From the IMG/VR virus record IMGVR_UViG_3300023174_000038, positions 1 through 64,000 of that record: 64,000 nucleotides of DNA; one strand, written 5' to 3'. Every line of letters starts with the position of its first letter. The first letter of the stretch is position 1. Positions 10,492-48,720 of the stretch are shown piece after piece. A model generated the notes under the pieces. The model worked only from the letters and a program-made list of their open reading frames with translations. It was not told the origin of the DNA and made no database searches. A program made the translations under genes and the position numbers.

Positions 10492-10569
10492 GATAAATTT
10501 CCTTATAAATTGAGATGGTCTCGTTTTTAATATTCGCCGCTTCCCTATGAAGCGACTAACACAAGAGTT

Positions 10570-10608
10570 AGTATAGCATGTCTAACTCTCAATGTCAATA
10601 GTATTTAT
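10570..10608 (-). promoter_or_regulatory. gp32 promoter: sigma70 TTGACA-N17-TATACT plus an upstream ATAAATA
   Basis: Minus strand ATAAATACTATTGACATTGAGAGTTAGACATGCTATACT. Confidence 0.7.
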
Positions 10609-10654
10609 CCCTATTGTGGGTAAACACATTTTTTTGTATAGGTTTTTAACCCTT

Positions 10655-14004: not shown

Positions 14005-15552
14005 TTAGCTTATGACCGCAAAGAAGGGTAAAGGAGCTATATACTCATCATGGTCACGTATCTGTGTCTCTAAATTCACATGATAATCACTTAAATGCTG
14101 TAACATACGTGTTACTAATAAGCTAGCCATAATCAAATCGTCGGTATCACCTATTTTAGCAGCATAACTACCACCATGTGCTACAAATGCTTTTAGTTCA
14201 CTTATAAGACTACGACTATTTACAGTCATTTTCTTGCTCTCAACCAATGTTTTGAACTTAGCACAACTTGCTAGTTTACTTTTATTAGTTGTGTTAAATC
14301 CTCTACGTCCTTTGCCTGCTTCACTAATAAAGATGCCCGGGATATTGCTTTCGCCGTATTCGTTTAATGATATGATAGCGGCTTCCCCTATACCATTACA
14401 TTCTATACTGTAATAGATGTTATTGGGTTCATTTGTACATTCTGCTATGTATTTGCTTATTTGTGCTAAGAGTTTAATCTGACTAGGGATATCTGTTTTA
14501 TTATGTTTCCATTCACCAACTTGGGTAGTAGTGTTTGCTTCAAAAATTTGTATTGCTGACGGATCACCGCCTGTACCAAGACTTGGATCTAATCCTATAC
14601 AATAGATATTACCTTTCTTTGGCTTTTCATACCACCGAACTTGTCCTATACGACTAACAGGTTCTATACCTTCCATAGCTATCAATGTGTTAGGATTAAT
14701 CAATGTCTCATCGGCAATAATAAATTCGCACCCAATTTCTCGGTTGAAACGATCCTCGCCGAGCTGTGCTTTCATTTCGTCAGCCCACTTTTGGTCTCGT
14801 CCTGGTTGCTCACTCCAATGCGCTCTATATGCTCTAAATCCGTTAACACCAATCTCAGTGGTATTGCCAAAATCATCTTCAGTCTTGTTAGCACCTTTCC
14901 AAATATAAGCAAATTGATCCTCATCACTATTTGGTGTGCTTGTGATAATAGCTTTACCACCAGTACTTAGTGTTGGTGTAATAGCTGTCCAGAATTCTTT
15001 AGCGATACTTGGGCGAACGAACGCAAACTCATCCAAGTATAATAGAGTAATAGACATACCACGACCTGTATTTTCAGTTGTTGTAGCTGAAACTATACGA
15101 GATCCATTCTCAAAGTCTAATGACCCTTTATTGTATGTTGTTACACCTGCTTTAATGTAATCAGGACAGTTTTCATATGCATATCGTATCCGTTGCATAA
15201 TCTCCTGTGCACCTGTATATTTGTGTGCCGCAACTAAGATAGTAGAGTCCGGAACAAACATTGCATACCAAAGTAGGTAACCGGCTGCACTTGTTGATTT
15301 ACCTGATTGTCGTGGCATCAAACTAATTGAAAATCTATAGTTATGATAGGTTTCAATTAATCGTGTTTGATAAGCCCAAGGGTGATAGACCATACTACCT
15401 TTAGTAGGATGCTGTATTATAAAAAAGTTATCCATGAAGTATAGATAACCTGTAACAGGATCACAACATTTGATAAAATCCTGTAGTTCTTTATCAGTTT
15501 TGAAAACTGTTTTAGTATAAGGATTTTTTACTAGTGAAGGGGCATTACTCAT
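14005..15552 (-). CDS. terL: Terminase large subunit (T4 gp17-like)
   Basis: PRQSGKST, LYLDEFAF, ITSTPN, nuclease motifs GLDPSLG and DDLIMA. Confidence 0.95.
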   Translation of the reverse strand: MSNAPSLVKNPYTKTVFKTDKELQDFIKCCDPVTGYLYFMDNFFIIQHPTKGSMVYHPWAYQTRLIETYHNYRFSISLMPRQSGKSTSAAGYLLWYAMFVPDSTILVAAHKYTGAQEIMQRIRYAYENCPDYIKAGVTTYNKGSLDFENGSRIVSATTTENTGRGMSITLLYLDEFAFVRPSIAKEFWTAITPTLSTGGKAIITSTPNSDEDQFAYIWKGANKTEDDFGNTTEIGVNGFRAYRAHWSEQPGRDQKWADEMKAQLGEDRFNREIGCEFIIADETLINPNTLIAMEGIEPVSRIGQVRWYEKPKKGNIYCIGLDPSLGTGGDPSAIQIFEANTTTQVGEWKHNKTDIPSQIKLLAQISKYIAECTNEPNNIYYSIECNGIGEAAIISLNEYGESNIPGIFISEAGKGRRGFNTTNKSKLASCAKFKTLVESKKMTVNSRSLISELKAFVAHGGSYAAKIGDTDDLIMASLLVTRMLQHLSDYHVNLETQIRDHDEYIAPLPFFAVIS

Positions 15553-15588
15553 AACAAGTATTTATATGAGCAACTTAGGAATAGTATT

Positions 15589-35541: not shown

Positions 35542-37209
35542 TTATTTATATTGTAGATTCACCAAATCTTGGTGTAGTTTATCGCTAGACAATTGACGCA
35601 AAACTCTTGCGTTGTCTACATTTACTTGATTTTTGTAAATCTCTTTTGGTGCATAGAACGGTGCATCTGCTAATGCAAATGAATATGCTTGATAGCCTGC
35701 AGGTTGTGTTGCCATTCTTGCTATATCAACACCGCCGGCTAATTCATTTGGCTGAACATTTCTATTCACTGTTTCTGTCTTTTGTTCTTGTGTATTTGTA
35801 TTTTGTACAATTGGTCTTTCTTCAATTGCATCATTCAATACTGAACGTGAACCCATTTTAATACCTTCATTCTGAGGTACTTCTATTTCAGGAGTAGTAG
35901 CATTACGACCCTGCGGTGATTGTAAACTATACATTTCAGTTGATCCAAATGAAACATTATTACTCATTGTATTATTAGGATCAGAAAATATAGTTTGAGT
36001 TGGTGAACGTAGTCCTCCAAGATTGATTACACTAGTCTGTGTAGTATTTACAATAGCAACAATAGATGATTGTGAGGATGTATTTATTTGTGTAGTTGAT
36101 GATCCAGTAGTTGTCATACTGCTAGTAACACTTTGTGCAGTTAGTGAACCAGCAACTGATTCTGCTTGTTCTCGTGCTTGCTGTGCATCTTTTGCGGCGG
36201 CTGACTCTGCTGCCTGAACAACTGCCTTAGCTTCATTGCCTATTCTAGTTTGGTTACTACTAATCATACTTAATACATTACCTAGACTAGGACCGGCTTT
36301 ACTATCATCTTTAGCAGATTTATTTTCACTAGGACGAGGCTGAGATCCTGCAGGAGGAGGATTTCCTGGCGGGGGAAGGGGCCCTGCTTGTTGAGAACCA
36401 TTAGGTGGGGGAGGACTACCTGGGGGAGGAGGTGGAGGTGCGCCATCTTCTGGTGGAGGTGGGGGAGGTGCATCCGCTACTGCTACTGGAGTAGGTGCTA
36501 ATTTAGCAAGAGCATCTGAGTAACCTCTACAACTAGGTGAGTATAATGGGTTAGTAGCACAAGGGTCAACACTATACTTCAAACTAAAATTTACATTAAT
36601 AATTTCAGGACCATATGGTCCAACCCAGTAGTTGTTGTCTCTTCCCACAAATCCATACTGAGCATTACCTAAATCAGGAGTAGCATATGCTGACTTAAAT
36701 GTTTCTGACCAATAGAACTGAGTCCAACCATATCTACGATTTACATCATAGTTGTATGCTTCTACTACCTTTGTGTTTGTGTTGTTGTATATGTTTACAT
36801 AAGCCTTTAGATAATCTTGTCTGCCATCATCCCATCCATTACCGTTCTTAGCAGTAAAGCCAAAGTTAAAACCATTCACTTGTAATCCTGTGCCACTATT
36901 AGGTAGCGCATTTTTAATAGCAACAGTTTGATTTAAGTCTGTTAGTCCATATGAAAAATTAATGACATTAGACCCTGCGCCCCAGGCGGCAACTCTGGGC
37001 AATGGACCACAATAACCAGGGCCGCCCGGCTCCCAACATGTAAGCTGTTGACCAATAGTACCGGCATTTTGCCATGTACTTGTAGTAGCTGTGGCATTAC
37101 TGGTAAAATTGACCAAATTACCAGTTGTTGTTACATCCTGACTATTAGAATATCTTATTGACAATAAGACCAAGAACAGCCCCAATGCCAATTTTCTTAT
37201 AAGTGTCAT
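35542..37209 (-). CDS. Secreted/surface protein with a beta-rich N-domain, Pro-rich linker and low-complexity stalk
   Basis: Signal peptide; DPCATNPLYSPSC; PPPPPP runs. Confidence 0.75.
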   Translation of the reverse strand: MTLIRKLALGLFLVLLSIRYSNSQDVTTTGNLVNFTSNATATTSTWQNAGTIGQQLTCWEPGGPGYCGPLPRVAAWGAGSNVINFSYGLTDLNQTVAIKNALPNSGTGLQVNGFNFGFTAKNGNGWDDGRQDYLKAYVNIYNNTNTKVVEAYNYDVNRRYGWTQFYWSETFKSAYATPDLGNAQYGFVGRDNNYWVGPYGPEIINVNFSLKYSVDPCATNPLYSPSCRGYSDALAKLAPTPVAVADAPPPPPPEDGAPPPPPPGSPPPPNGSQQAGPLPPPGNPPPAGSQPRPSENKSAKDDSKAGPSLGNVLSMISSNQTRIGNEAKAVVQAAESAAAKDAQQAREQAESVAGSLTAQSVTSSMTTTGSSTTQINTSSQSSIVAIVNTTQTSVINLGGLRSPTQTIFSDPNNTMSNNVSFGSTEMYSLQSPQGRNATTPEIEVPQNEGIKMGSRSVLNDAIEERPIVQNTNTQEQKTETVNRNVQPNELAGGVDIARMATQPAGYQAYSFALADAPFYAPKEIYKNQVNVDNARVLRQLSSDKLHQDLVNLQYK

Positions 37210-38287
37210 CTATCTTTTCCTCATCCATTTTTGGAATCTTGTCTGGATTAGCTTCCCACTGTGCTTTAGCTTGCTCACCAATCTTACCTTCATATGGACA
37301 AGGTGTGCCGGCTGCTAACATAGCATCAAATACACGACGGTCTTGACACATAGTAGCAACAGCGGCTACTTTCATACCCATATCATATAGTGTCTTAGAT
37401 AACTTTAATCGTTCACAATTCATATCACGTATTGTTCCACCTGAACTTACACCAAACACTTGTGTTTGTACACTACCTGAACTTCCTGTTGAACAAAGGT
37501 CAGCATTACCACCTGATAACATAGAAGGAGCTACAGCAGTAGGTGGAGGTTGAATCACACGTTGGGTAATTTCAGTCTGATTAATATTCTTGTTAGTTAA
37601 TTCACCTTGTTGAATATTTGTATTAACTGAATTGTTTTGATTTATATTATTATTAGTGGAAGTACTAGTACTAGTTGATGTGTTAATATTACGGTTAGTC
37701 ATATCACCCGTATTAACATTGTTATTAGTAGCTGTACTTGTACTAACATTGTTATTGTTATTAGTAGCCGTACTTGCACTAACATTGTTGTTATTGTATG
37801 TCATCGTACCAGTATTTTCGTTCTTATTAATATTGGTATTATTACTTGTACTCGTACTAACATTGTTATTGTTATAAGTCATAGTACCAGTATTGACATT
37901 GTTATTATTATATGTCATTGTACCAGTATTTTCATTTTTATTAATATTTGTAACAGTTCCACTCTGAATATTATTGTTTGTGTTTACACTAGTGCTAGAA
38001 CTATTGTTATTATTAGTATTTGTACTAGTACTATTAACAGCACTGGTACTATTGCTATTGCTGTTACTGACTGTATTACTGTTTGAAGTAACCGTACTAG
38101 TGCTATTACTTGTACTGTTTGTATCAACTAAACTTTTGGAATCATACCCGCCTTGATTGATTAATGTACTTGTACCTGTGGTTGTACCACCGCTGGAACT
38201 TGATGTGGTAGTAGTTTGTGCTTGTGTAGTGAATGCCATACCCAGCAAGGCAACTATAGCGAGAATCTTTTTCATTTTTATTATCAT
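37145..38287 (-). CDS. Secreted Asn/Thr/Ser-repeat protein with a Cys-containing C-terminal domain
   Basis: Signal peptide (MKKILAIV...AQA); NTGTMTYNNNNV repeats; PPPTAVAP...C..CERLKLSK..MCQD..PCP. Confidence 0.75.
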   Translation of the reverse strand: MIIKMKKILAIVALLGMAFTTQAQTTTTSSSSGGTTTGTSTLINQGGYDSKSLVDTNSTSNSTSTVTSNSNTVSNSNSNSTSAVNSTSTNTNNNNSSSTSVNTNNNIQSGTVTNINKNENTGTMTYNNNNVNTGTMTYNNNNVSTSTSNNTNINKNENTGTMTYNNNNVSASTATNNNNNVSTSTATNNNVNTGDMTNRNINTSTSTSTSTNNNINQNNSVNTNIQQGELTNKNINQTEITQRVIQPPPTAVAPSMLSGGNADLCSTGSSGSVQTQVFGVSSGGTIRDMNCERLKLSKTLYDMGMKVAAVATMCQDRRVFDAMLAAGTPCPYEGKIGEQAKAQWEANPDKIPKMDEEKIDDTYKKIGIGAVLGLIVNKIF

Positions 38288-38347
38288 CCTCTAGAGATAG
38301 TATTTATTTGCTTATTAGTTGAGAAATATCACACTTTATTAAATAGG

Positions 38348-38367
38348 AAAGGCTCCTAAGAGCCTTT
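38348..38367 (-). terminator. Terminator hairpin ending the tmRNA coding piece
   Basis: AAAGGCTC-TTAG-GAGCCTTT, identical to 27946-27965. Confidence 0.7.
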
Positions 38368-38681
38368 ACTGAGTTTCTGTTACGAGGTATGTCTTACCCT
38401 AGGCTGCGTTTAGGCTGCCAATGCGAACTGTGAGTCGTTTGCGTTTACTTTTTTTGCTTCTACGGCCGAGTTCCCCCAACCCTAACGGCTTCTGCTTTGC
38501 CGAGCGCCTAATCTTAACTACTATCCTGTCGGTCGATCCCAAGTCACCCCCATCATAAAAACACAATACCAAAGTAAATTTACACGGAATACCAAAGTAA
38601 ATTTATGCTCTTATGGTGGAGGTGGGGAGAATTGAACTCCCGTGTCGCCAGTGTTTCCTAAGCAGGTTTACGCTGTTCTTA
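38368..38681 (-). ncRNA. ssrA: Two-piece (circularly permuted) tmRNA: acceptor piece about 38681-38614, intervening segment 38613-38552, coding piece from 38551; tag ANDSQFALAA at 38442-38410
   Basis: T-arm GGGAG-TTCAATT-CTCCC and CACCTCC-ACCA end; 5' GGGGGTG pairs with CACCTCC including the G3-U alanine wobble; tag frame GCA AAC GAC TCA CAG TTC GCA TTG GCA GCC TAA. Confidence 0.92.
38565..38605. repeat. 18-bp direct repeat (AATACCAAAGTAAATTTA x2, 23-nt period) in the tmRNA intervening segment
   Basis: 38565-38582 identical to 38588-38605. Confidence 0.9.
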
Positions 38682-39314
38682 CTATTTAGTCAACCTACCC
38701 CTAGATAGATTGAATAAAGTAATTTTATCATCATCTGGTTTTAAATAAAAGTTAATTTGGGAATTATTATACCAATGTTTACCGTATGCATTACTATTCT
38801 TATTCTTTCTGTTGTCTCTCCATTCCGATGTAGGTATCCATCCGGATGGAATTTCATTTTTGTAGTACATTTTACGATTAACTAATTCAACTGACGATTT
38901 TTCTACACACCAAACTTTTCCAAAATTAGAGTTATTTTCTTTTTGTTGGTGCTTTCTTTCTTTAAAAGTTTTATTTCTCTTTTCCATTGCAGATTGGGTT
39001 TTTGACAACTTACTTGCTCGGGCTTGTTGTTCTTGATTTATCGCAAAATTAGTTTTAGTTTGAACATTTTTAAATGGATTAGGATGTAATTGTCTGCATT
39101 TTTTACCAGCTTCACTTTGTCTAATTTTTACTAATTCTTCTTTAGGACTTAATTTTGCTAAACCCTGCCATGCAACATAATCTTGCCAACGACCATATTC
39201 TTCGTATAACTTGCGATGTGCCTCTGCATGTTCATCAATAGATAATTCTATAAGGTTCCTAGGATCATCTGTCCCGCCTGCGTGTTTAGGAATAATATGG
39301 TGTTTATGGCTCAT
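38682..39314 (-). mobile_element. Free-standing HNH homing endonuclease
   Basis: HHIIPKHAGGTDDPRNLIEL...EHAEAH; two NS(N)xxGKxW repeats; own ATAAATA 5 nt before ATG 39314. Confidence 0.85.
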
Positions 39315-39332
39315 GCAAGTATTTATGCCTGC

Positions 39333-39381
39333 CGCACCCCCGTCCAAGACACTTTTCTCTTTGCTTCATACAGCAATAACT
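39333..39381 (-). pseudogene. Truncated relic of a second tmRNA acceptor piece
   Basis: TAAATA (39394-39389), then GCTGTATGAAGCAAAGAGAAAAGTGTCTTGGACGGGGGTGCG breaking off in the presumed T-loop at the HNH promoter. Confidence 0.55.
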
Positions 39382-42300
39382 TCAATTGTATTTAGTATTA
39401 AAATACTCTTTTAACCAAGGCCAATCATAACTTAGTCGTAATTTATCTAACTCACCATTGACTGATTCATAGTATTCTACAGCATGTTGAGCACCTTGTA
39501 TACTATATTGGGCATAGTCTCCTTCACCAACTGTTGTCCATACTTTCAATCTGTGTCTACTAATAGCACTATCATCTAATCGTAACTTAATAGCTTCACG
39601 GAAACTAGTGCGCCATGTACTAAACTCATCTGTATTATATTTTGCTACACCTGAATTAATCTCAACAACTTCATGCTCACTATCCAATGTAAAGTCTAGA
39701 CCTTTACCCATATTACCTAATGTAATCTGTTTATTGTATGCAATCATGGCTTGGTGACCATATACTAATCCATTAACAGGGTTACTTGCATAGAAGATAT
39801 AATGTTTAGGTACTTGTAATCTATCAGGTTGCCATGAGAAATCAAACTTACTATTGACTTTTAACTTAGCAAATACAGTAAACATCCAAGATGTTTGACT
39901 AGCAATTGCGGTTGCATGATAGGCAGCAACACGACCATTGACCCCATCAACTCTAACAACACGATTTTTCAGCCCTTTAGTCACGTTCAGTAAGTGTTCG
40001 TAGTTCTCGTCAGCTATGGCTTCACCGTTACTTAGGAAGACTATATCCAGCGGCTTTGACTGTCCCATCTTTGTTGATTTAGCAATATATGGATAATCAT
40101 ACAATTCTTTCTCAACATGATCGTTAGCTTCTTTGGGTACAACAATACGTGTGCCTCCCATATTCGTAATCAATATATTCTTAGATTCAATAGACCACAT
40201 ACTGATTGGTTCATCATTAATGTCTGGTGCGATTAAATTATCACTTGTAGTAAACACAGCATAAGGGAAGTTATAACTATGTTTTTTGAAATTCAAATGT
40301 GTATCAGCATCAGTAACAAAACTAGGGGCAGGCAAACGTTTTACTTTTTGATGCTGATTAAAGTTAATCTTCTCTATATTTTCTAGCTTATCCAAATCTT
40401 CTACAAGAATACGTAATTTGTTTACATTAATAAAGAATGTATCTCCAAACTTCTGTTTATCACTAGGGAATACATGTAACTGCTCCAATGAGAATGGATC
40501 ACATATATAAGTAAAGTCAAAGTTAGTGTAATCACATATTGAACTGCATACCCAAATGTAATGGTCCTTTTTAATGCCCAACTCATATAGCATATTCTTC
40601 AATGTAGTTAAGTAATCAGTTTCATACTTAATTGTATAAACGTTTTCACGTTTAGTCTTGCTTTCAATTAATGAAACAATATCATTAACTCCGTCATTAC
40701 CATAATCAATTAAGTAAACATCATACAAACAGTTACTAGCAACGGCACGTTTTGTTTTTACAAAGTTTAAGTTACTTAGGTGTTCAATAATTTTCACATA
40801 CTTTGTATCTTCCGCAAAGGTTTCTTTATTGACCATAAACGTACTACCCCAATGACTCCATTGTGTTCCAAACACATGAACCATTGTCATTTGCCACGGG
40901 TTAGGATAATAGTTAAAATCAAAGTTAGTGTAATCTAATTCGCTATTCAGTATCCAGCATAGTTCTGTAGTAGATTTATTGATACAGCGATTGATTGTGT
41001 CTACCCAACTGTGTAGATAACGTGTCTTTTGTAATGTAGGGAATTGTAACTTAAGCTGTTCAAATCTATTAGCTGATTCTTTATTACCTTTATCCACAAA
41101 GAAAGTATCAACTTGTTTGAATAACTTAGATAGATATTCTTCATCTAATTTTGTATTCTCAATAAAACTAATATCTCTATAACCTTTTTGCCACATCTTA
41201 CCGTTAACTAAGTAGGTTTGTGTTAACTCACTGTCAGGACTACCAAACGTATTAATATTAAATGCTTGTTCTTTAGTAGGTTTCCAACTAAAATCAAATT
41301 TAGTATAATTAATATTTTTACGTAATGCCCAAAATATTTCATTGCTATGTTGTTCTATTAATGCATCAAGTGTAGTTTCAATGTAATATTGAGGGTATTG
41401 AATAATACTATCTTCTGATAATAGTATATTTTCTAATAATACTATTTCTCCATCATTACCCGGTGTTATAAATTTAGGACCATCTTGCAAGTGAATATCT
41501 TCTAATATTGTACCAAATTGATAGATATAAGGAGGACTATATGGATCTGGGTGCCAACTAAAATCAAATATAGTTTTATCAAAACCTGCAGGTATGATCC
41601 AATTAGTAAAATTTTGTTTAAGTTTTGCTATAGGATAATCCATATATTTGACCTCAGTTGCGCCATTTGCAATATATCTTGGGCCACCTATCTTATCCCA
41701 TGTGTTAGGGAACTGATAGATATATGCAGGCTCAGTACTATCTGGATGCCAACTATAATCAAATTCTTCTATATTATCAGGTATATCCCAATTAGTTTTA
41801 TTAGGCAAATACTTTGATTTAATGATATCCATGTACTTTATGTTTGTATTTTCTGTACAGCCGGGAGCAGTAAACATAGGTCCATTTGTTTTTTGCCATT
41901 GTGTTCCAAATTGATAGAATAAAGGCTCATCATCTATATTTGGATGCCAGCTAAAATCAAACTCACTAGTATCTAGCCCTGCAGGTATAGACCAATGTGT
42001 CATATCTTGTTTAACTTTTGCTATAGGATAGTCTAAGTATTTTGTTTCTGTAGCACCCTCTACTGTAAATTTAGGTCCACCTGTTTGACTCCACGTACTA
42101 GGGAACTGATAGATATATGCAGGTTCTGTATCATCGGGGTGCCAACTCCAATCAAATGACGTTTGGTCTACATTACGTGGGATCAACCAATTTGTAAATC
42201 TCCATGCTACTACTTCTGCTTTAACAGCATCAATATATTTTAATTCTGTTGCACCAGGAACTATATAGCGAGGTCCCCCTGTCTTTTGATGTATAGTACC

Positions 42301-43524
42301 AAATTGATATATGTAAGGTGGGTCATGTGGATTAGGTTCCCAACTAAAATCAAAACTATTCTTTATAACATAAGGGGGTATTTCCCAATTGTCCGTGCAT
42401 GGTTTACGTGTAGCACGTTCTTCCATGTATTTGTATTCAGTTGCTCCTTCAACAACATATTGTATAGATATTTTATCTTCTGGCTTATTCCATTGATTGC
42501 CCCATGCATAGATATAGGGAGGACTCCACGGGTCAGGAACCCATGAATAATTTATCCCATCACTATTTTCTAAATGTTCAAATCGTGTACTGTTAGGTAA
42601 CAGTTTAGCTTTCATTGATTCATCATCAATAAACTTATATTCTGTTGCTCCTGGTACATGATATTCAACAGTTGGCATAATCTCTGCTGGATATTGCGTA
42701 TTACCAAATACATAAATAAATGCAGGTTCACGCGGATCAGGTCTCCAACTAAAATCAAAATTAAACTTATCTATAGAGTTCCATATTACCCACCTATCCC
42801 ATTCAGGTAATACAGCAACTGAGTTATCCATATACTTTCGGTCAGTAGCTCCTACACAATGATACTCTACTGTGGGTTTTAACTCAGCGGATATATATTT
42901 ATTACCCCAAGTATAGATATATGCGGGTTCACGTGGGTCAGGTCTCCAACTAAAATCAAAACTTGATTTATCTACCGCTTGTATTTCTATCCAGTTATCC
43001 CATTCAGGTATTAATTCTACTACCTCAGGCATGTATTTTACATTAGTTGCATCCTTGACATGATATTCTACATAATGTTTAATTTCAGTTGGATAGAATT
43101 TGCAACCCCATTTATATATGTAGGGCGGGTCATGTGGGTTTGGCTCCCAACTAAAATCAAACTTTAATTCATCAATTTTATCTAGCACCACCCAATTAGC
43201 ATTTTTTAAATTCTTTCTGAGTATAGGCTCAACATCAGCACGATATATAATTATGTCGCTATATCGGTGTGAGCATAGCCAAGTGCCACTATCTTTATTT
43301 TGTTTATTAGGCCATACATTGTTATGTTCACTTGTCCAAACTTCGTCATCGGGTAAAAAGTCAAAGTCCCAATCCCAATCAAAATTTGTATAATCACAAT
43401 ATTCATTGATTATCCAAAAATGGTCGGTGGTACATTGTTGTCTAGCATCGGCTAAATCAATTGCATGTTTTTCTCTGGGGTGGGCGTTGGGTTTACTACC
43501 GTAATAAAATACATCTCTAAGCAT
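39382..43524 (-). CDS. 1380-aa repeat protein with degenerate glycosyltransferase-like modules
   Basis: Nine roughly 67-aa FDFSWxPxPxxPxYIYxFG repeats; C-terminal domain (DIVFLSNGE..RVDGVNG..AYH..NPVNGLVYG..WRTSFRE..K) resembles 50931-51884. Confidence 0.75.
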   Translation of the reverse strand: MLRDVFYYGSKPNAHPREKHAIDLADARQQCTTDHFWIINEYCDYTNFDWDWDFDFLPDDEVWTSEHNNVWPNKQNKDSGTWLCSHRYSDIIIYRADVEPILRKNLKNANWVVLDKIDELKFDFSWEPNPHDPPYIYKWGCKFYPTEIKHYVEYHVKDATNVKYMPEVVELIPEWDNWIEIQAVDKSSFDFSWRPDPREPAYIYTWGNKYISAELKPTVEYHCVGATDRKYMDNSVAVLPEWDRWVIWNSIDKFNFDFSWRPDPREPAFIYVFGNTQYPAEIMPTVEYHVPGATEYKFIDDESMKAKLLPNSTRFEHLENSDGINYSWVPDPWSPPYIYAWGNQWNKPEDKISIQYVVEGATEYKYMEERATRKPCTDNWEIPPYVIKNSFDFSWEPNPHDPPYIYQFGTIHQKTGGPRYIVPGATELKYIDAVKAEVVAWRFTNWLIPRNVDQTSFDWSWHPDDTEPAYIYQFPSTWSQTGGPKFTVEGATETKYLDYPIAKVKQDMTHWSIPAGLDTSEFDFSWHPNIDDEPLFYQFGTQWQKTNGPMFTAPGCTENTNIKYMDIIKSKYLPNKTNWDIPDNIEEFDYSWHPDSTEPAYIYQFPNTWDKIGGPRYIANGATEVKYMDYPIAKLKQNFTNWIIPAGFDKTIFDFSWHPDPYSPPYIYQFGTILEDIHLQDGPKFITPGNDGEIVLLENILLSEDSIIQYPQYYIETTLDALIEQHSNEIFWALRKNINYTKFDFSWKPTKEQAFNINTFGSPDSELTQTYLVNGKMWQKGYRDISFIENTKLDEEYLSKLFKQVDTFFVDKGNKESANRFEQLKLQFPTLQKTRYLHSWVDTINRCINKSTTELCWILNSELDYTNFDFNYYPNPWQMTMVHVFGTQWSHWGSTFMVNKETFAEDTKYVKIIEHLSNLNFVKTKRAVASNCLYDVYLIDYGNDGVNDIVSLIESKTKRENVYTIKYETDYLTTLKNMLYELGIKKDHYIWVCSSICDYTNFDFTYICDPFSLEQLHVFPSDKQKFGDTFFINVNKLRILVEDLDKLENIEKINFNQHQKVKRLPAPSFVTDADTHLNFKKHSYNFPYAVFTTSDNLIAPDINDEPISMWSIESKNILITNMGGTRIVVPKEANDHVEKELYDYPYIAKSTKMGQSKPLDIVFLSNGEAIADENYEHLLNVTKGLKNRVVRVDGVNGRVAAYHATAIASQTSWMFTVFAKLKVNSKFDFSWQPDRLQVPKHYIFYASNPVNGLVYGHQAMIAYNKQITLGNMGKGLDFTLDSEHEVVEINSGVAKYNTDEFSTWRTSFREAIKLRLDDSAISRHRLKVWTTVGEGDYAQYSIQGAQHAVEYYESVNGELDKLRLSYDWPWLKEYFNTKYN

Positions 43525-43542: not shown

Positions 43543-45096
43543 TTATTTGTTATAATTATTTAATATATCAGATAGCCATGGTATATAATTTTCTAATTTA
43601 TGACCTCTAATGTCATCTAACCTACGGGTATCGTCAGCTAGCTTTGGTAACAGATGGCTATTATCTTTAGCAAACATATAGTTGATTAAACCACTATAGC
43701 TATGCCTAAATATATTACCCATTTCTAGTCCATATTTTTCATCTATTTCTTTGTAAAAAAATTCATATGCTTCTCGTATTTGATTTTTTACATTAACGGG
43801 TAGTACTTGTATACTCATGGGAGACGGGCCCTCTAGTACGTGATAGCTAGGCGTTTTTCTAATTCTTTTATAATTTTTTTCTATTAACCATTTAGAAATT
43901 TCTAAAAAATGATATACATTGAATATACTTATAGTAGTAGATATTGTACCATAAATAGATTTAGTTGGATTATTACCTAACACATCTAAATTTTGTTCTA
44001 GTGCATCCCAAGTACTTGGATATCTTAGATAGTATGCCAAATCCTCAATTGCATCTATACTGCATCCTATTCCTACGGATCTGAACTCTTCCCATAAGTT
44101 ATATAGCTTATTTGGTATAGCAAACATATTTGAATTGTAATCCAAATGAACACGATTGCTATGACCCATATCTATAATTTTTTGTAATAATTTAAAATGT
44201 ATTTTATTAATTGTAGGTTCGCCGCCGGTAAAATAATATCGGTCAATATAGGGAATTAGTTTTTCAATTTGATTCCAGAATTCATCCGATTCATACCATT
44301 CAAAATCCGAAGAATCAATGGTATAATTATTATTTTTTTTGATTACATTATACGTTTTTCCCCCATAAAAAGACATAGGAGCTGAGGAAGGCTTTTCTCC
44401 CTCGTATGACATGAAAACAAAATCGTCATACCACAGACTGCTATCGGTCGGGCCGCAATATCTACATTTTAAATTGCATAAATTTCCAAAACGAATATCA
44501 ATATATTTTATTGGAAACTTTTCTATATCTATACTTCCATCATTAGCAGTGTTATCAATGAATCCTGTATGTCCGTATGTATTAATACTGTGTAATCTTT
44601 TACTAGATAAACCGGTGTCTTCTTCTTTCCAACATAAATTACATGACGGATGTTTTTCTCCGCGCAACATACTTGCACGTAATTCTTTAAATACTGTGTT
44701 ATTTCGTGATTGATTTATATCAGTATTTTTAACGTTTAACATTTCTCCGTTCTCTATTAGTTTACCGTACGGGTAGTATATCTGTTGACAACAAATTCTT
44801 AAATCTCCATTTTGTTGTATGCCAGTAGAGACCCATGGTATTGGGCAAAACGTTGAATTTTTTGGAAGGTCCTGCATTTGAGGATTTATTTGATTCAGTC
44901 TTGTTTTTGCTAGCTCAATTGAAGCTTCTGAGCAATGAGGATTTTTCATACCTGCTACTATAACTTCTGATTCAACATCATGTGTTATCATAGCTGTTAT
45001 TAATTCAGGAAAATCTGTAATTGTAATAAGTTCAACTCGTTCATTAGAATCAAAACAGTTGTGAAGTTTATTAAACCAATATTCACTGGTATTCAT
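43543..45096 (-). CDS. Radical SAM protein with an N-terminal Twitch/SPASM-like domain
   Basis: FCPIPW..GDLRICC..SCNLCW; CNLKCRYC; FTGGEP. Confidence 0.88.
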   Translation of the reverse strand: MNTSEYWFNKLHNCFDSNERVELITITDFPELITAMITHDVESEVIVAGMKNPHCSEASIELAKTRLNQINPQMQDLPKNSTFCPIPWVSTGIQQNGDLRICCQQIYYPYGKLIENGEMLNVKNTDINQSRNNTVFKELRASMLRGEKHPSCNLCWKEEDTGLSSKRLHSINTYGHTGFIDNTANDGSIDIEKFPIKYIDIRFGNLCNLKCRYCGPTDSSLWYDDFVFMSYEGEKPSSAPMSFYGGKTYNVIKKNNNYTIDSSDFEWYESDEFWNQIEKLIPYIDRYYFTGGEPTINKIHFKLLQKIIDMGHSNRVHLDYNSNMFAIPNKLYNLWEEFRSVGIGCSIDAIEDLAYYLRYPSTWDALEQNLDVLGNNPTKSIYGTISTTISIFNVYHFLEISKWLIEKNYKRIRKTPSYHVLEGPSPMSIQVLPVNVKNQIREAYEFFYKEIDEKYGLEMGNIFRHSYSGLINYMFAKDNSHLLPKLADDTRRLDDIRGHKLENYIPWLSDILNNYNK

Positions 45097-46403
45097 AGCC
45101 GTTCTCCTGTATGATGTTGTAACTCAGGAAAGGTTTTTTTGAAATCAGTATTTCTTTCTTTATCTAGTTTAATCAAATAACCCATATACCAGTTAACATC
45201 AAAGTCAACAGTTTCTTCTAATGCATTTTTAATTATACTTAACCTGTTATCAAATACATTTTTACAATCTTCCTGTAATTTTTGTGAAGATTTTAATGGT
45301 AATAATGTATTGTAATACCATTGCTCATACTCGGAAATTTTAATACGTAAATGTTCTTTCCATTCTTTACTAGCGGACCTTATTGAAAAGTACTCAGGAT
45401 ATAGTAAAACAATATTATGATAATCAGATTCCCAAATACTAGTGTTGTAAAACGTATGCGGGAAGAGGTCATTTACTAAAAAATATTCTAGTATATCTTT
45501 TATCCGATGTATATTCATCAGACTCCAGGTTGGAGTAATTACCCAATGACGATTACTTCCTGTTAAATTATCTTTTAATAGTTTAATATTTTTCAATATT
45601 TTATTTGCATCAGCTGGATAGCGTATGTAAAATAATCTATCCACATCAACTTCATCTAAACTTACTAATACACGTAATTTTTCCATGTGTTTCCAGTAAT
45701 CTAAAACGTCTGTTGATTTATAAGTCATTGTGGTTAAGTTAGTACTGTACACAAATTCTATTTCTCCTAATCTGTTTGATTCTTTAATATATTCTAGTAT
45801 TTCATAATGTTCAGGATGAAGTAAAGGTTCTCCACCAGCAAAATATATTTCTTCAACATTGTTTACTTGCGATTTTATAGTTTCAATGAAGCTTTCTTTA
45901 TGATTTTTACTGTTATTAAATTGATCCTCAGTATAATTAGGATCAATTGCCTTCATAATAGGTACCCATGAACTACTATACGTAGGATGGCACACTGTAC
46001 ATGCTAGATTACATAAATTGTTAAATCTGAAATCCCATTTCAAAAATTTCATACTACTCATTGTTCCATCTATAGCAGTATTATCTTCAATCAGTTCTTC
46101 ATAAAAATCTTTAAACCTATCATTAAAGCTTCGGCGTATTGTTGACGTACTTCCCCATTCTTCTTCTTTGTAGCATCTTGTACAATGTTTTGATTTTGTA
46201 TCGTTTAATATATCTCGTCTTAATTCTTTATAATTTTCATTGTTCCAAATATCTTGTATATTTTCTTTATACAAATTCCCCATACTGCCACCTAAACTGA
46301 TACAGCAGGGAAGTATATCTCCTGTTGGAACATTATGTATATGCATAAACGGAGCCATGCAAAATACTTTGCTTTCTTTAATGTGAAATGTTTTTTTAGT
46401 CAT
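45093..46403 (-). CDS. Radical SAM protein with an N-terminal Twitch/SPASM-like domain
   Basis: FCMAPF..GDILPCC..HCTRCY; CNLACTVC; FAGGEP; start MTKKTF at 46403 (track 46523). Confidence 0.88.
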   Translation of the reverse strand: MTKKTFHIKESKVFCMAPFMHIHNVPTGDILPCCISLGGSMGNLYKENIQDIWNNENYKELRRDILNDTKSKHCTRCYKEEEWGSTSTIRRSFNDRFKDFYEELIEDNTAIDGTMSSMKFLKWDFRFNNLCNLACTVCHPTYSSSWVPIMKAIDPNYTEDQFNNSKNHKESFIETIKSQVNNVEEIYFAGGEPLLHPEHYEILEYIKESNRLGEIEFVYSTNLTTMTYKSTDVLDYWKHMEKLRVLVSLDEVDVDRLFYIRYPADANKILKNIKLLKDNLTGSNRHWVITPTWSLMNIHRIKDILEYFLVNDLFPHTFYNTSIWESDYHNIVLLYPEYFSIRSASKEWKEHLRIKISEYEQWYYNTLLPLKSSQKLQEDCKNVFDNRLSIIKNALEETVDFDVNWYMGYLIKLDKERNTDFKKTFPELQHHTGERL

Positions 46404-48720
46404 TTGAAATTTTAAAAACTTTTTTTGATTTATTTCTATACTGTTCGTGTACCGTTTCTTTTGTTTGAATTTCAGATGATATCCAATCTTTAATATTACC
46501 TGTTTCTTCAAAAACACCATCAAAACTATAATTAACCTTTTCTCTTTCCAATCGGTATGTTTCTTTTAAGTGCGGAGTTACTGTATCATGTACAAATTTA
46601 TGTGTCAACTTTATATTATAGTTGCCATTAGAGTCTATCTCAAACGTTAGATCAGAGTCGTACATTCTAGAAATATAATCACCAAACGTATTAAAGTCAG
46701 TTTCTGCATTGCACTTAAATGTAAATTTAAAAGCTCCAAAGTACGTGTGTATAACATATAGCAAAGCAAAATATTCGTTAGTTATACTAGCAAAAAACGT
46801 GTTATCTGTGTTTCTATTCAAGTTAACATATTGGTCATATGTTATATAGTCTGTTACATTTTTAGTACCAGTAAAAGTATAAAAATCTTGTATATTGTGA
46901 TATCGTTGAGCATTAATCATAGCAGAATCAGAATAATAATTGATTATATCTAACCACACATGGTTTAATTTTATTCTTAAAAATCTATGCATAGCAGTAT
47001 TATTATCAGTATGCCATGAGTTAAATAAATTGTTATCGTAGGGTTTCTCAATCCAATTCATTCCATAATCTTTCCAATTAGTATCCCAGTGTGCAATACT
47101 TTGGGGCGGTGATGCTCCAAAGCCTGGACTTATATTATCAATCCAATTTCTACAATTGAATAGTAATTGAAAACTATGTAAGCAGTCGATTGGTTCTTCT
47201 GTGGGGAATCCTACCATCCAATTTATGTGAACAAACATCCCCGACGCTTTAGAATCTTTAAGATTATTTTCTACTTCCCATATGTCAATCTTCTTACGCA
47301 TATCATTAAGAACTTTTTGACTTCCTGATTCTACCCCATAGCTCAGACATGTGCATCCACTATCTGTAACCTTTTGTAAGAATTCAGCAGTCATTCTTCC
47401 ATCACATCTTGCGTAAGAGTTCCAATGTATTTTAATATTTCTTTCTAATATTAGATCAACCAGTTTTTGGAAATTTTTTAAATTTCCATTAACTAAACTA
47501 TCAACAAACCAAAATCTACTAACACCTAAATTATTTTGTTGGTATTCTATTTCATCTACTACTCTTTCCGGAGTCATTGATCTAAATTTCCAGAAATGTG
47601 TTTCAGCGCAAAAACTACAGTCTGCTACACACCCTCTAGACGTTTCAATGCTAACCCCGTAGCTGTGTTCGTAGTTGCTAAAATTGTAATCAGAATAGTC
47701 CGGATACGGGTATACGTCTAAATCTAATTTACTATTTACCGTCCCTATAGTTTGACTGCTACCAATATCGGTATCATCAGTTAACTCTTCCAAAAATTTT
47801 ACAAAATTTTCTTCAGCCTCTCCTATAAATTTGTAATTTATAAGAGTTGTTAATAAATGTCCGTTGCTAATAGCACCGGGACCTCCTACCACGATACATA
47901 CATCGGGCATCATATATCTTAATTCCCGTATTAGATATAGACTAGCATGGATGTTTGTATCATATAAACTAAATCCAACGACCTTGGGATTAGATTGAAG
48001 AATATTAAATAATGTTCTATCAAATACGTCCTTCAAGTCGGGCAATATAAATTCACTAAAACTTTCCGAGCTATTCCAATAAAAATATCTATTTGATGCC
48101 CAGTAGTCAATTCCGGTGGTATCATGAAGATGATGGAAAGATTCTATATTAAGATCGTACACTCTAACACTATAATCTAAATGTCTCAATAATCCTGTTA
48201 GTTTGGCGAGGTTGTAAGGTGGAAATAGTTTTCCCCAAGCTGGCGCTACTACAAGTCCAATTCTAAATTTAGAAGTGTCTGCCCATTCAACTTCTTTATG
48301 GATATATCCGGAATCTACGGTAGGTTGTTCATCTCCTAAATGTGATATTGCATGACTTAGATTTGAATCTTTTTTAAGTATATGATTTAGGATAATTTGA
48401 TCCCGATCACCGACAACCATCTTTGTTGCCTCTTCCTCTTGTTTTGCAATATCATCCGACATTAGTGTTATTCTTTGTCGTCTGTCTCTTTCACTCCAAA
48501 ATCTAGGATTATCAATTTCGGGAAATCTTAATATTGCAATTTCAATAAATGCTTTATCAATTTTAGAACTAACCGCGGCAGCCTCTACGACAGACGCCAT
48601 TGTGTCCCATTTGATCATATTTTCTAATATATAAGTTGGGCATCCTCGTGTGGATGCAACATTAATTCTTTCTAAATGATCCGCATCTTTTAGTCTTTCT
48701 TCAAAGTTTATTTTTTTCAT
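46396..48720 (-). CDS. B12-binding (class B-like) radical SAM protein
   Basis: PPYNLAKL, VVGFS, VVGGP, GEAE (cobalamin domain); ETSRGCVADCSFC; YGVESGS; MVGFPTE. Confidence 0.88.
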   Translation of the reverse strand: MKKINFEERLKDADHLERINVASTRGCPTYILENMIKWDTMASVVEAAAVSSKIDKAFIEIAILRFPEIDNPRFWSERDRRQRITLMSDDIAKQEEEATKMVVGDRDQIILNHILKKDSNLSHAISHLGDEQPTVDSGYIHKEVEWADTSKFRIGLVVAPAWGKLFPPYNLAKLTGLLRHLDYSVRVYDLNIESFHHLHDTTGIDYWASNRYFYWNSSESFSEFILPDLKDVFDRTLFNILQSNPKVVGFSLYDTNIHASLYLIRELRYMMPDVCIVVGGPGAISNGHLLTTLINYKFIGEAEENFVKFLEELTDDTDIGSSQTIGTVNSKLDLDVYPYPDYSDYNFSNYEHSYGVSIETSRGCVADCSFCAETHFWKFRSMTPERVVDEIEYQQNNLGVSRFWFVDSLVNGNLKNFQKLVDLILERNIKIHWNSYARCDGRMTAEFLQKVTDSGCTCLSYGVESGSQKVLNDMRKKIDIWEVENNLKDSKASGMFVHINWMVGFPTEEPIDCLHSFQLLFNCRNWIDNISPGFGASPPQSIAHWDTNWKDYGMNWIEKPYDNNLFNSWHTDNNTAMHRFLRIKLNHVWLDIINYYSDSAMINAQRYHNIQDFYTFTGTKNVTDYITYDQYVNLNRNTDNTFFASITNEYFALLYVIHTYFGAFKFTFKCNAETDFNTFGDYISRMYDSDLTFEIDSNGNYNIKLTHKFVHDTVTPHLKETYRLEREKVNYSFDGVFEETGNIKDWISSEIQTKETVHEQYRNKSKKVFKISND

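Follow-up and report, generated by a model that had tools for sequence, protein, structure and literature searches.

An HNH homing-endonuclease gene inside the two-piece tmRNA gene of a lake phage, accompanied by a foreign tRNA-like domain

Organization of the locus

The sequence analysed, referred to here as the window, is a stretch of 64,000 nucleotides (positions 1 to 64,000 of IMG/VR record IMGVR_UViG_3300023174_000038) from a 349-kb lake phage. An HNH homing-endonuclease gene lies inside the phage's own two-piece tmRNA gene, where it is preceded by a dead 5' stump of an acceptor piece and followed by a complete two-piece tmRNA (38681..38348). All features are on the minus strand and are as follows.

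39382..43524, minus strand: conserved 1380-aa gene of unknown function, the last codons of which (ACT AAA TAC AAT TGA, stop at 39384..39382) hold the promoter-like TAAATA/TACAAT of the ancestral tmRNA gene.
39385..39414, minus strand: promoter-like region of the ancestral, now truncated, tmRNA gene, TTAAAA-N18-TACAAT, overlapping TAAATA at 39394..39389.
39333..39381, minus strand: relic, the 5' half of a tmRNA acceptor piece of allele A (P2 5' strand, GGAC, T-stem GGGGG 39341..39337, T-loop bases TGCG 39336..39333), cut off inside the T-loop.
39319..39332, minus strand: left end of the cassette, comprising the linker G-CAGGC (39332..39327) and the promoter-like motif ATAAATAC (39326..39319), 4 nt upstream of the HNH start codon.
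38682..39314, minus strand: intact HNH homing-endonuclease gene (210 aa; ATG at 39314, stop at 38684..38682), the last codons of which (TTG ACT AAA TAG) embed TAAATA (38688..38683).
38614..38681, minus strand: working acceptor piece, allele B (P2 5' strand, T-stem GGGAG 38641..38637, T-loop TTCAATT 38636..38630, T-stem CTCCC 38629..38625, acceptor strand CACCTCC 38624..38618, ACCA 38617..38614).
38552..38613, minus strand: spacer between the acceptor and coding pieces, with a 17-nt direct repeat AAATTTACTTTGGTATT (38604..38588 and 38581..38565).
38503..38551, minus strand: 5' end of the coding piece, also allele B (acceptor strand GGGGGTG with G3-U pair, GGGATCGAC element, P2 3' strand down to GCGCT), the right-hand end of the replaced tract.
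38348..38502, minus strand: resident-type mRNA-like half with PK1, tag reading frame 38442..38410 (ANDSQFALAA, stop TAA) and terminator hairpin 38367..38348.

The tmRNA was identified using ARAGORN, which calls a permuted tmRNA at 38319..38707 with tag ANDSQFALAA, and using Rfam covariance models, which give 91.2 bits for beta_tmRNA (gathering 84) and 90.1 bits for tmRNA_permuted (gathering 47). The acceptor stem GGGGGUG pairs with CACCUCC 7/7, with G-U at position 3, and is followed by ACCA. The tag frame starts with the Ala resume codon GCA. The arrangement is not an assembly artefact: contigs of an independent study (run X2) cover the tmRNA and the HNH without mismatch, and a 2050-nt contig at about 95% identity crosses the HNH, the relic and the 1380-aa gene.

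The HNH protein scores 21.6 bits against Pfam HNH (PF01844; cutoff 21.4) and matches PHROG 655 'homing endonuclease' with E=1e-12. Its N-terminal motif, HHIIPKHAGGTDDPRNL...EHAEAH, aligns to the HNH domains of a group II intron maturase and of Cas8f-HNH. In 40 homologues G13, G14, N20, H29 and H33 are invariant and H5/H6 are at least 90% conserved. A fold search was uninformative. The gene is under purifying selection (dN/dS 0.07-0.19), and none of its 685 homologues has a functional name. The 1380-aa gene has no Pfam or PHROG family; 75 related loci were found in viral contigs, many followed directly by a two-piece tmRNA.

The relic and the chimeric tmRNA

The loci used for comparison are numbered with the prefix L. 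The HNH-less relatives L018, L002 and L066 carry an intact two-piece tmRNA that starts at the very same place, overlapping the end of the 1380-aa gene. The relic has no mismatch to L018 between the stop codon of that gene and TGCG (39381..39333), where the window reads ...CTTGGAC GGGGG TGCG; the alignment block, which runs two columns past the junction, scores 55/57. Over the same block the relic scores 53/57 to L002 and is 32% identical to the window's own working acceptor piece. L018 then continues AATCCCCCCAGGTCCACCA, into the T-arm and CCA, as the first-pass annotation had predicted for relatives lacking the HNH. The relic is therefore not a chance look-alike. The same sequence as the promoter-like region precedes the intact tmRNA in L002, L018, L032 and L003.

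In-register pairing was scored between the acceptor and coding pieces. The relic pairs 11/11 with an allele-A coding piece but only 7/11 (2 Watson-Crick) with the window's coding piece, with which the downstream acceptor piece pairs 10/11. This supports the pairing proposed in the first-pass annotation, in which only the downstream piece fits. Across alleles, cognate P2 pairing is 10-11 of 11 and cross-allele pairing 3-7 of 11; cognate acceptor stems pair 7/7 and non-cognate stems 5/7, so that the two halves of the tRNA-like domain co-vary.

Two details of the first-pass annotation required correction. The relic had been described as ending exactly where the HNH promoter begins, but the 6-nt linker GCAGGC separates it from the promoter-like ATAAATAC. 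TAAATA had been taken as the element upstream of the relic, but a sigma-70 consensus scan finds TTAAAA-N18-TACAAT there, and TACAAT may be the real −10 element. That the second TAAATA drives the new acceptor piece, as was also proposed, is unproven: the motif is conserved at the end of every same-strand HNH gene and in front of nearly all of these phage tmRNA genes, but no terminator separates the relic, HNH and tmRNA, and read-through transcription is equally possible. ATAAATA occurs 22 times on the coding strand against 2 on the other, and 10 copies lie within 25 nt upstream of ORF starts.

Identity was then compared segment by segment. The working acceptor piece is 98-100% identical to L004, 96-100% identical to L098 and near-identical to L168, whereas its 5' half is 32-44% identical to alleles A, C and D (76-88% identity is reached only over the short, conserved 3' end of the acceptor piece). 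The 5' end of the coding piece is 100% identical to L004, 92% to L098 and 46-55% to alleles A, C and D. The spacer is unalignable between alleles. In contrast, the mRNA-like half is 88% identical to L003, 86% to L002 and 84% to L018, but only 70-71% identical to the allele-B carriers L004 and L098. The replacement is thus confined to the tRNA-like domain (acceptor piece, spacer and the first ~50 nt of the coding piece, up to about 38503), and the tmRNA is chimeric. This refines the first-pass proposal of co-conversion of a resistant ssrA.

Because the relic ends in the T-loop, a self-splicing group I or II intron was considered, with the relic as exon 1 spliced to a downstream exon; group I introns are known at four subsites of the tmRNA T-loop, some of them carrying homing-endonuclease genes (PMC11915505). 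No intron family matched positions 36000..42000 even at E<=10, the base before the break is G rather than the usual U, and the downstream gene has its own complete 5' half, which fits the coding piece. No splice joint was seen in RNA contigs, although the RNA libraries gave no coverage of the HNH and the power of this test was very low. We consider an intron very unlikely.

Recurrence of the cassette in other viral contigs

The HNH is absent at the same site in L002, L018, L066, L032, L003 and L005, and is present in 3 of the 75 loci around the 1380-aa gene. The same HNH and allele-B module lies behind three different relic contexts and in front of different tag regions. Besides the window, L168 has a relic of allele F, an HNH 77% identical, allele B and tag ANASNDEVYALAA, and L098 has a relic of allele A behind a different upstream gene, a 48%-identical HNH and allele B. 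A second HNH clade (68-70% identical; 10+ loci) is always joined to one acceptor-piece type but to eight different tags. The closest HNH in hand is only 77% identical, so no actual donor was found.

Of 35 HNH homologues in IMG/VR, 24 lie within about 1 kb of a tmRNA gene, and 21 junction instances were found in metagenome contigs. More distant homologues (S-SKS1, MAG contigs) are not next to a tmRNA. The sequence T(T/G)CGA|CAGG(C/T)ATAAATAC(T/A)TG(T/C)ATG is shared by all same-strand HNH loci except L111. The relic breakpoint after T-loop base 5, T(T/G)CGA, recurs with three different right-hand sequences (CAGG..., CTAAGCC... and CTCAAAAAC...); in the window the relic stops after the fourth base. 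In many loci only a 19-nt stump (TCCTGGAC-TTTGG-TTCGA) lies upstream of the HNH, behind unrelated genes, which simple homologous homing does not explain. Many loci keep only this stump or none at all, yet have a complete tmRNA, which again disfavours an intron.

HNH-less and HNH-carrying relatives occur in the same lake samples; L004, L098 and L106 come from the window's own sample. In run X2 a contig at depth 104 joins the relic region to the mRNA-like region without the HNH, beside this phage at depth about 6.

The locus is also very mosaic without the HNH, with alleles A, C, D and B occurring among close relatives. Other relics are followed by small cargo ORFs rather than an HNH (L024, L062, L106, L111 and L156), and L060 has an orphan acceptor piece and a duplicated gene end. 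It is therefore possible that the tmRNA locus is a general recombination hot spot, at which ordinary illegitimate or homologous recombination swapped the tRNA-like domain and created the relic, with the HNH as a passenger. We regard this as unlikely, since HNH homologues of two different arrangements are tied to tmRNA genes in many unrelated contigs, the HNH stays joined to one type of tRNA-like domain while relics and tags change, the gene is kept under purifying selection, and the breakpoint position is the same in independent alleles.

Origin of the arrangement and related systems

The likely explanation, held with fair confidence, is that a free-standing HNH homing-endonuclease gene, travelling together with a tmRNA tRNA-like domain, has invaded the two-piece tmRNA gene of this phage, in line with the mobile HNH-ssrA cassette proposed in the first-pass annotation. 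In the ancestral state, still seen in HNH-less relatives, the tmRNA gene starts inside the last codons of the 1380-aa gene and runs acceptor piece, spacer, coding piece. In the window the resident acceptor piece is broken after the 4th-5th base of its T-loop; the inserted DNA brings a short linker, its own promoter-like ATAAATAC and the HNH gene, a whole new acceptor piece and the matching 5' end of the coding piece, and rejoins the resident sequence in the conserved PK1 region (GCTCGGCAAAGCAG). The result is a working-looking chimeric tmRNA and a dead 5' stump.

By analogy with intronless homing in T4-like phages, we infer that in a mixed infection the HNH cuts or nicks an HNH-less tmRNA gene in or near the T-arm DNA, and that the break is repaired from the HNH-carrying genome, with the left crossover in the relic and the right crossover in the conserved mRNA-like domain, so that the nuclease gene and the tRNA-like domain are copied together. 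The direction of transfer is likewise inferred. Cleavage of the T-arm DNA and resistance of allele B are inferred from the recurrent breakpoint only, without biochemical evidence; a breakpoint marks where homology ended in a founding event and need not be the cleavage site. The working alleles behind HNH genes do not share one obvious 'resistant' T-arm (their loops include TTCAATT, TTCGAGC, 6-nt TTCGAA, GGCGGTA and GGCAGTT), and odd T-loops also occur in HNH-less phages. The permuted gene order puts both strands of the tRNA-like domain about 130 nt apart in the DNA, and one short conversion tract can thus swap a self-consistent, co-varying module.

The closest precedent is T4 SegB, a free-standing GIY-YIG homing endonuclease in the T4 tRNA gene cluster (PMC2330249). 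Its recognition site contains the conserved T-psi-C stem-loop DNA of tRNA genes, and in mixed infection it and the neighbouring tRNA genes are inherited together and replace the recipient's markers. The breakpoint here is also in the T-loop DNA and the neighbouring tRNA-like domain travels with the nuclease, but the nuclease is of the HNH family, the target is a tmRNA, the insertion lies inside the gene and leaves a truncated 5' stump, and the product is a chimeric RNA whose domains have different origins. In the intronless homing and marker exclusion of T4-type phages (SegF, SegG, mobE; PMC2790892, PMC2988022) the endonuclease gene lies next to a cleavage-insensitive allele of its target, flanking sequence is co-converted, and the gene is present or absent among close relatives. 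Those genes sit between protein-coding genes; here the insertion interrupts an RNA gene and carries a replacement half-gene, so that no splicing and no intergenic site are needed.

Group I introns of the tmRNA T-loop invade the same few nucleotides of the same gene, but here gene integrity is kept by duplicating and replacing the 5' half instead of by splicing, and the host is a phage with a permuted gene. Integrase-borne islands in tRNA and tmRNA genes (Islander; PMC4383910) also split the gene, restore it with incoming DNA and leave a displaced fragment at one end. Those islands use a tyrosine integrase, replace the 3' end and leave a 3' fragment with an att repeat. Here only the HNH lies between the relic and the tmRNA, the 5' half is displaced, and the relic and the new 5' half are 32% identical, so there is no repeat. 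Complete permuted ssrA genes are known from aquatic phages such as OM43 phage Melnitz (PMC9004378), for which no link to a homing endonuclease, relics or domain swapping is reported in the papers found.

Three ways are known for a tRNA-type gene to survive invasion: intron splicing, restoration of the 3' end by an integrase-borne island, and insertion beside the gene rather than in it. This locus shows a fourth, in which a homing-endonuclease gene sits inside the gene and carries a replacement half-gene that, owing to the circular permutation, is a complete, internally co-adapted tRNA-like domain. It defines a large, unnamed HNH family tied to phage tmRNA genes, which offers candidate nucleases with a defined RNA-gene target. 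It also explains pseudo-tmRNA stumps that annotation will otherwise miss or miscall, shows that tmRNA domains are exchanged independently in nature, and provides natural experiments on which T-loop and P2 variants a tmRNA tolerates.

A further reading, not exclusive of the main explanation, is that the HNH is domesticated and serves the phage, for example by cutting the tmRNA genes of competing phages or of the host or by regulating the tmRNA locus, with its conserved 5' flank as an operator that mimics the target. Strong purifying selection holds across deep divergence. In the divergent arrangement a conserved inverted repeat (GTCGAAACC..TTGTCAA..GGTTTCGAC) lies between the HNH and the tmRNA, its arms copying the tmRNA 5' element of the same locus. 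However, functional data are lacking, and the presence/absence polymorphism among close relatives and the relics are the marks of a mobile element rather than of a fixed accessory gene; we think this reading improbable.

It is also possible, although less likely than not, that phage tmRNA genes and a dedicated family of HNH endonucleases are in an arms race fought in the T-arm DNA. Repeated invasions would leave stacks of relics (L024, L062, L106 and L111 each carry two) and would drive wholesale swapping of the tRNA-like domain as a self-contained module, which the permuted gene order makes possible. They may also explain the strikingly noncanonical T-loops of these phage tmRNAs (GGCAGUG, GGCGGUA, UGCGAAU and 6-nt loops in place of the near-universal UUCRANN). 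The conserved GGTT(T)CGAC element in front of every HNH gene would then be a target mimic that the nuclease binds to control itself.

Organization of the locus and the truncated tmRNA gene

The window is part of a 348.7-kb viral contig from a lake metagenome (IMGVR_UViG_3300023174_000038), with about 35% G+C and nearly all genes on the minus strand. A large terminase subunit at 14005..15552 confirms that it is a phage. Among phage GenBank records no close relative was found, and only the N-terminus of the HNH matched S-SKS1-type cyanophages, at 71-72% over about 200 nt. The features of the locus, in order along the minus strand, are as follows.

43524..39382 (minus): conserved 1380-aa gene of unknown function, with a TAAATA/TACAAT motif inside its last codons
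ending at 39333 (minus): relic, a 49-nt stretch ending CTTGGAC-GGGGG-TGCG
next (minus): linker GCAGGC, followed by ATAAATAC
ATG at 39314, stop at 38682 (minus): 210-aa HNH gene
38707..38319 (minus): ARAGORN call of the circularly permuted tmRNA gene that follows directly after the HNH gene and is complete, with tag ANDSQFALAA
38604..38588 and 38581..38565 (minus): two copies of a 17-nt direct repeat, AAATTTACTTTGGTATT, in the intervening segment between acceptor piece and coding piece
38367..38348 (minus): terminator hairpin

In Rfam the tmRNA scored 91.2 bits as beta_tmRNA and 90.1 bits as tmRNA_permuted, both above their thresholds. Its acceptor stem pairs 7/7 with the G3-U alanine identity pair, and ACCA is encoded. 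The tag appears to resemble the E. coli tag ANDENYALAA, which points to a proteobacterial host, but no genome among 185,579 species encodes exactly this tag, and HNH relatives in the genome collection are all short MAG contigs with conflicting labels and no tmRNA. Directly downstream of the tmRNA (window 37145-38287) lies a 380-aa Thr/Asn/Ser-rich ORF with a signal-peptide-like start (PHROG 20531, unknown function), and upstream of the 1380-aa gene (43543-49973) lie three radical-SAM-like ORFs.

A search with the 1380-aa protein gave 75 related loci in viral contigs (loci are designated L followed by a number). ARAGORN found a two-piece tmRNA in 33 of them, and Rfam added more. The 1380-aa protein family has no known domain; its homologue in L060 shows many repeats of the type FDFSWHPD...PYIYQFGTQ. 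In L018, L002, L066, L003, L032 and L005 the tmRNA gene begins within the last codons of the big gene, exactly where the relic of the window begins, and there is no HNH. The relic has no mismatch to the L018 acceptor piece from the end of the big gene to TGCG, and the alignment block, which runs two columns past the junction, scores 55/57. L018 then continues AATCCCCCCAGGTCCACCA, which is the rest of the T-loop, the T-stem, the acceptor strand and CCA. The relic therefore stops after the fourth base of a seven-base T-loop (TGCGAAT), and it is only 32% identical to the window's own working acceptor piece. Alignment with relatives lacking the HNH had been proposed as a test in the first-pass annotation, which expected the relic to continue into an intact T-arm and CCA, and the test came out as predicted. 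Nucleotide identity of L018 (8780-10336) and L066 (10600-12160) to the window (39330-40880) rises from 55-75% to 87-93% over the last ~200 nt of the big gene plus the relic, although the proteins are only about 50% identical overall, which hints at local exchange, or at constraint, around the tmRNA start.

An assembly artefact is argued against by an independent study (sequencing run X2), which has mismatch-free contigs over the tmRNA and the HNH and a contig crossing the HNH, the relic and the big gene; the architecture also recurs in more than 20 contigs. An intron in the T-loop is disfavoured because no intron family matches at E<=10, the base before the break is G and the downstream gene needs nothing from the relic. 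RNA data could not add to this: four runs were compared with the region, and the RNA libraries contained only conserved tmRNA parts, mostly from relatives, with nothing over the HNH, so that neither splicing nor promoter use could be tested. In RNA runs X15 and X17, metatranscriptome contigs match the relic region (window 39333-39391) but continue into intact allele-A T-arms (allele A being the type found in L018 and in the relic), with loose ends at 39333/39336 that read ...AATCCCGCCAGGTCCACCATAAG on the minus strand. Allele-A acceptor pieces of relatives are therefore present in RNA libraries. An integrase-borne island is likewise disfavoured, as there is no integrase and no repeat, and it is a 5' part that is displaced.

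Extent of the replaced tract

Identity was calculated by segment against carriers of allele B (the type of the window's working acceptor piece) and against relatives with alleles A, C and D. The result shows that the working tmRNA is a chimera.

Identity of segments of the working tmRNA to other alleles
Acceptor piece, 5' half: 98% to L004 and 96% to L098 (allele-B carriers); 32-44% to alleles A, C and D
Acceptor piece, T-loop 3' part to CCA (17 nt, conserved): 100% to L004 and L098; 65-88% to alleles A, C and D
First ~50 nt of the coding piece (5' acceptor strand, GGGATCGAC element, P2 3' strand): 100% to L004 and 92% to L098; 46-55% to alleles A, C and D
From GCTCGGCAAAGCAG (PK1) to the terminator: 70-71% to L004 and L098; 88% to L003, 86% to L002 and 84% to L018 (alleles A, C and D)

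The values for the last segment match the level of identity of the flanking 1380-aa gene to those same relatives. The incoming tract thus runs from the T-loop break (39332) to about 38503, and the tag-coding half is resident.

The two halves of the tRNA-like domain co-vary. Thermodynamic co-folding of acceptor and coding pieces did not separate cognate from non-cognate pairs, because the minimum-energy folds were not the tmRNA fold, and in-register pair counts on the Rfam consensus helices were used instead. The relic pairs 11/11 with an allele-A coding piece but 7/11 with the window's coding piece, of which only two are Watson-Crick pairs, whereas the window's acceptor piece pairs 10/11 with its own coding piece. 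Cognate acceptor stems pair 7/7 and non-cognate acceptor stems 5/7. A swap of the acceptor piece alone would therefore give a badly paired tmRNA. The permuted gene order puts both strands about 130 nt apart in the DNA, so that one short tract carries a matched pair.

Recurrence of the cassette and of the relic breakpoint

A tblastn search with the HNH found it in L062, L024 and L098, and a dedicated search found 35 loci in viral contigs, of which 24 lie within about 1 kb of a tmRNA gene. A pattern search for the junction in metagenome contigs gave 21 instances.

Position of the HNH relative to a tmRNA gene in 35 loci
HNH on the same strand, directly upstream of a complete tmRNA (as in the window): 8
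HNH divergent from a two-piece tmRNA: 15
HNH upstream of a one-piece tmRNA (L138): 1
Contig ends too close to judge: 4
No tmRNA detected: 7

The most telling case is the closest HNH (77% identical), in L168 from an ENA assembly. It has a full relic of yet another allele (F, with intact forms in L031, L044, L060, L070 and L073), broken after GCGGG-TTCGA and followed by CAGGC. The HNH follows, then the same allele-B tRNA-like domain as in the window, then a different mRNA-like half with tag ANASNDEVYALAA. L098, from the window's own sample, has an allele-A relic behind an unrelated upstream gene, a 48%-identical HNH, and allele B. A second HNH clade (68-70% identical) is always followed by one acceptor-piece type (GAATATTGCTGTAAA...), but by eight different tags. 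The nuclease gene and the tRNA-like domain therefore stay together while the relic upstream and the tag region downstream change, which is the pattern expected from homing with a short co-conversion tract. That the HNH is a mere passenger cannot be excluded without biochemistry, but this fits poorly with the linkage pattern and with the purifying selection on the gene.

In all same-strand loci except L111 the HNH is preceded by T(T/G)CGA followed by CAGG(C/T)ATAAATAC; the upstream element of the HNH can be written GGTTCGAC-AGGC-ATAAATAC. The relic part keeps the recipient's own T-loop variant, TGCG or TGCA in allele-A relics and TTCGA in most others. L111 has two relics, both broken after TTCGA but followed by other sequences (CTAAGCC..., CTCAAAAAC...). 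The break after T-loop base 5 thus arose more than once. The CAGG after the relic may be a remnant of the acceptor 3' strand or of the coding piece (TTCGA-CAGGG follows the 5' element in allele A), which would make the junction a T-loop/5'-element hybrid formed through TTCGA microhomology; this is plausible but could not be decided. In many contigs only a 19-nt stump (TCCTGGAC-TTTGG-TTCGA) remains, behind at least four unrelated upstream genes, which the simple model does not explain.

A different breakpoint (GGACG followed by CAAGGGTAGGACACCG), followed by small cargo ORFs, lies further upstream in L024, L062 and L106, and those loci therefore carry two stacked relics. The older relics (L024:12695-13040, L062:11614-13030, L106:1855-2470, L111:1252-2460), broken either at this site or after TTCGA with CTAAGCC following, are succeeded by 0.3-1.4 kb of small ORFs of recurring families (MIDYHEAV...CMCRGC..., ...EKFAELIVEEC...) with no database family. 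In L060 (10980-11275) an orphan but complete acceptor piece with its own promoter is followed by a duplicated copy of the last ~30 codons of the big gene and a paralogue of the neighbouring 223-aa ORF, and a second, complete tmRNA lies 1.9 kb downstream.

We read the locus as intronless homing, here inside an RNA gene and with a carried replacement domain. The cleavage site and specificity of the HNH, the resistance of allele B and the direction and recency of transfer are inferred, and the idea that working alleles behind the HNH share a 'resistant' T-arm was not borne out. Group I introns invade the same T-loop in bacterial tmRNA genes (PMC11915505). T4 SegB recognises T-psi-C stem-loop DNA and drives inheritance of the T4 tRNA region (PMC2330249), islands restore tmRNA 3' ends after integration (PMC4383910), and two-piece tmRNAs are known in aquatic phages (PMC9004378). 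We found no paper that links an HNH family to phage tmRNA genes or describes relics and domain swapping.

The nuclease, expression signals and T-loop variants

The match of the nuclease to Pfam HNH is just above threshold (21.6 bits against 21.4), and PHROG 655 'homing endonuclease' matches at E=1e-12. The motif aligns to HNH domains of solved structures. In 40 homologues G13, G14, N20, H29 and H33 are invariant and H5/H6 are at least 90% conserved. There are 685 homologues in metagenomes, none with a functional name, and dN/dS between seven homologues is 0.07-0.19. The AlphaFold model was confident locally (pLDDT 88) but extended (pTM 0.41), and Foldseek against the PDB gave no significant match, with the best HNH hits at E>2.

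In L004, a close relative from the same sample, a 225-aa ORF (10121-10798, minus strand of the locus) lies between the big gene and an allele-B tmRNA. It matches PHROG 314 'homing endonuclease' at E=4e-7, and its N-terminal motif looks GIY-YIG-like by eye. No relic is present and the end of the big gene is altered. Its three relatives are not next to a tmRNA. The idea that two nuclease families target this locus rests on one case.

ATAAATA is strongly strand-biased in the window, with 22 copies on the coding strand against 2 on the other. ATAAATA(C) sits 4-25 nt before at least 10 ORF starts (for example at 15560, 32370, 34875 and 13990), often leaving almost no leader. It is probably a phage promoter of the T4-late type, and the HNH has a good copy 4 nt before its ATG. 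TAAATA also precedes almost every acceptor piece in these phages and is embedded in the last codons of every same-strand HNH gene (...AAA TA[AG]), which fits the proposal of the first-pass annotation that the second TAAATA drives the downstream acceptor piece. In L004, however, the same allele B is preceded by a full TTGACT-N17-TATAAT promoter, which the window has lost to HNH coding sequence. No terminator separates relic, HNH and tmRNA, and read-through from the TTAAAA-N18-TACAAT of the relic or from the HNH promoter is therefore as likely.

Where the HNH is divergent from the tmRNA (L114-L134; for example L121:2420-2500 and L118:2420-2500), the intergenic region holds a conserved, co-varying inverted repeat (GTCGAAACC..TTGTCAA..GGTTTCGAC, or GTCGATCC..GGATCGAC), which flanks the tmRNA -35 box and abuts the HNH TAAATA. 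Its arms copy the tmRNA 5'-end element of the same locus, and it could be an operator or a target mimic.

Many of these phage tmRNAs have T-loops that depart from the near-universal TTCRANN, namely GGCAGTG, GGCGGTA, GGCAGTT, TGCGAAT and apparent 6-nt loops (TTCGAA, TTCGAT), as seen at L003:10186, L032:10180, L012:11896, L021:11725, L073:14542, L110:3180, L160:1471, L108:3187 and L018:10324. Allele F occurs with either TTCGACT (L060) or GGCAGTG (L073) on the same stem. All pass the Rfam threshold where tested. Another phage contig, L138 (452-3325), carries an RNase P RNA (191 bits), at least ten tRNA genes and a one-piece tmRNA, with an HNH homologue 300 nt upstream of the tmRNA. Some relatives (L031:11669-12211, L050:13110-13633 and L072:11404-11922) have tmRNA genes of 520-540 nt with very long intervening segments.
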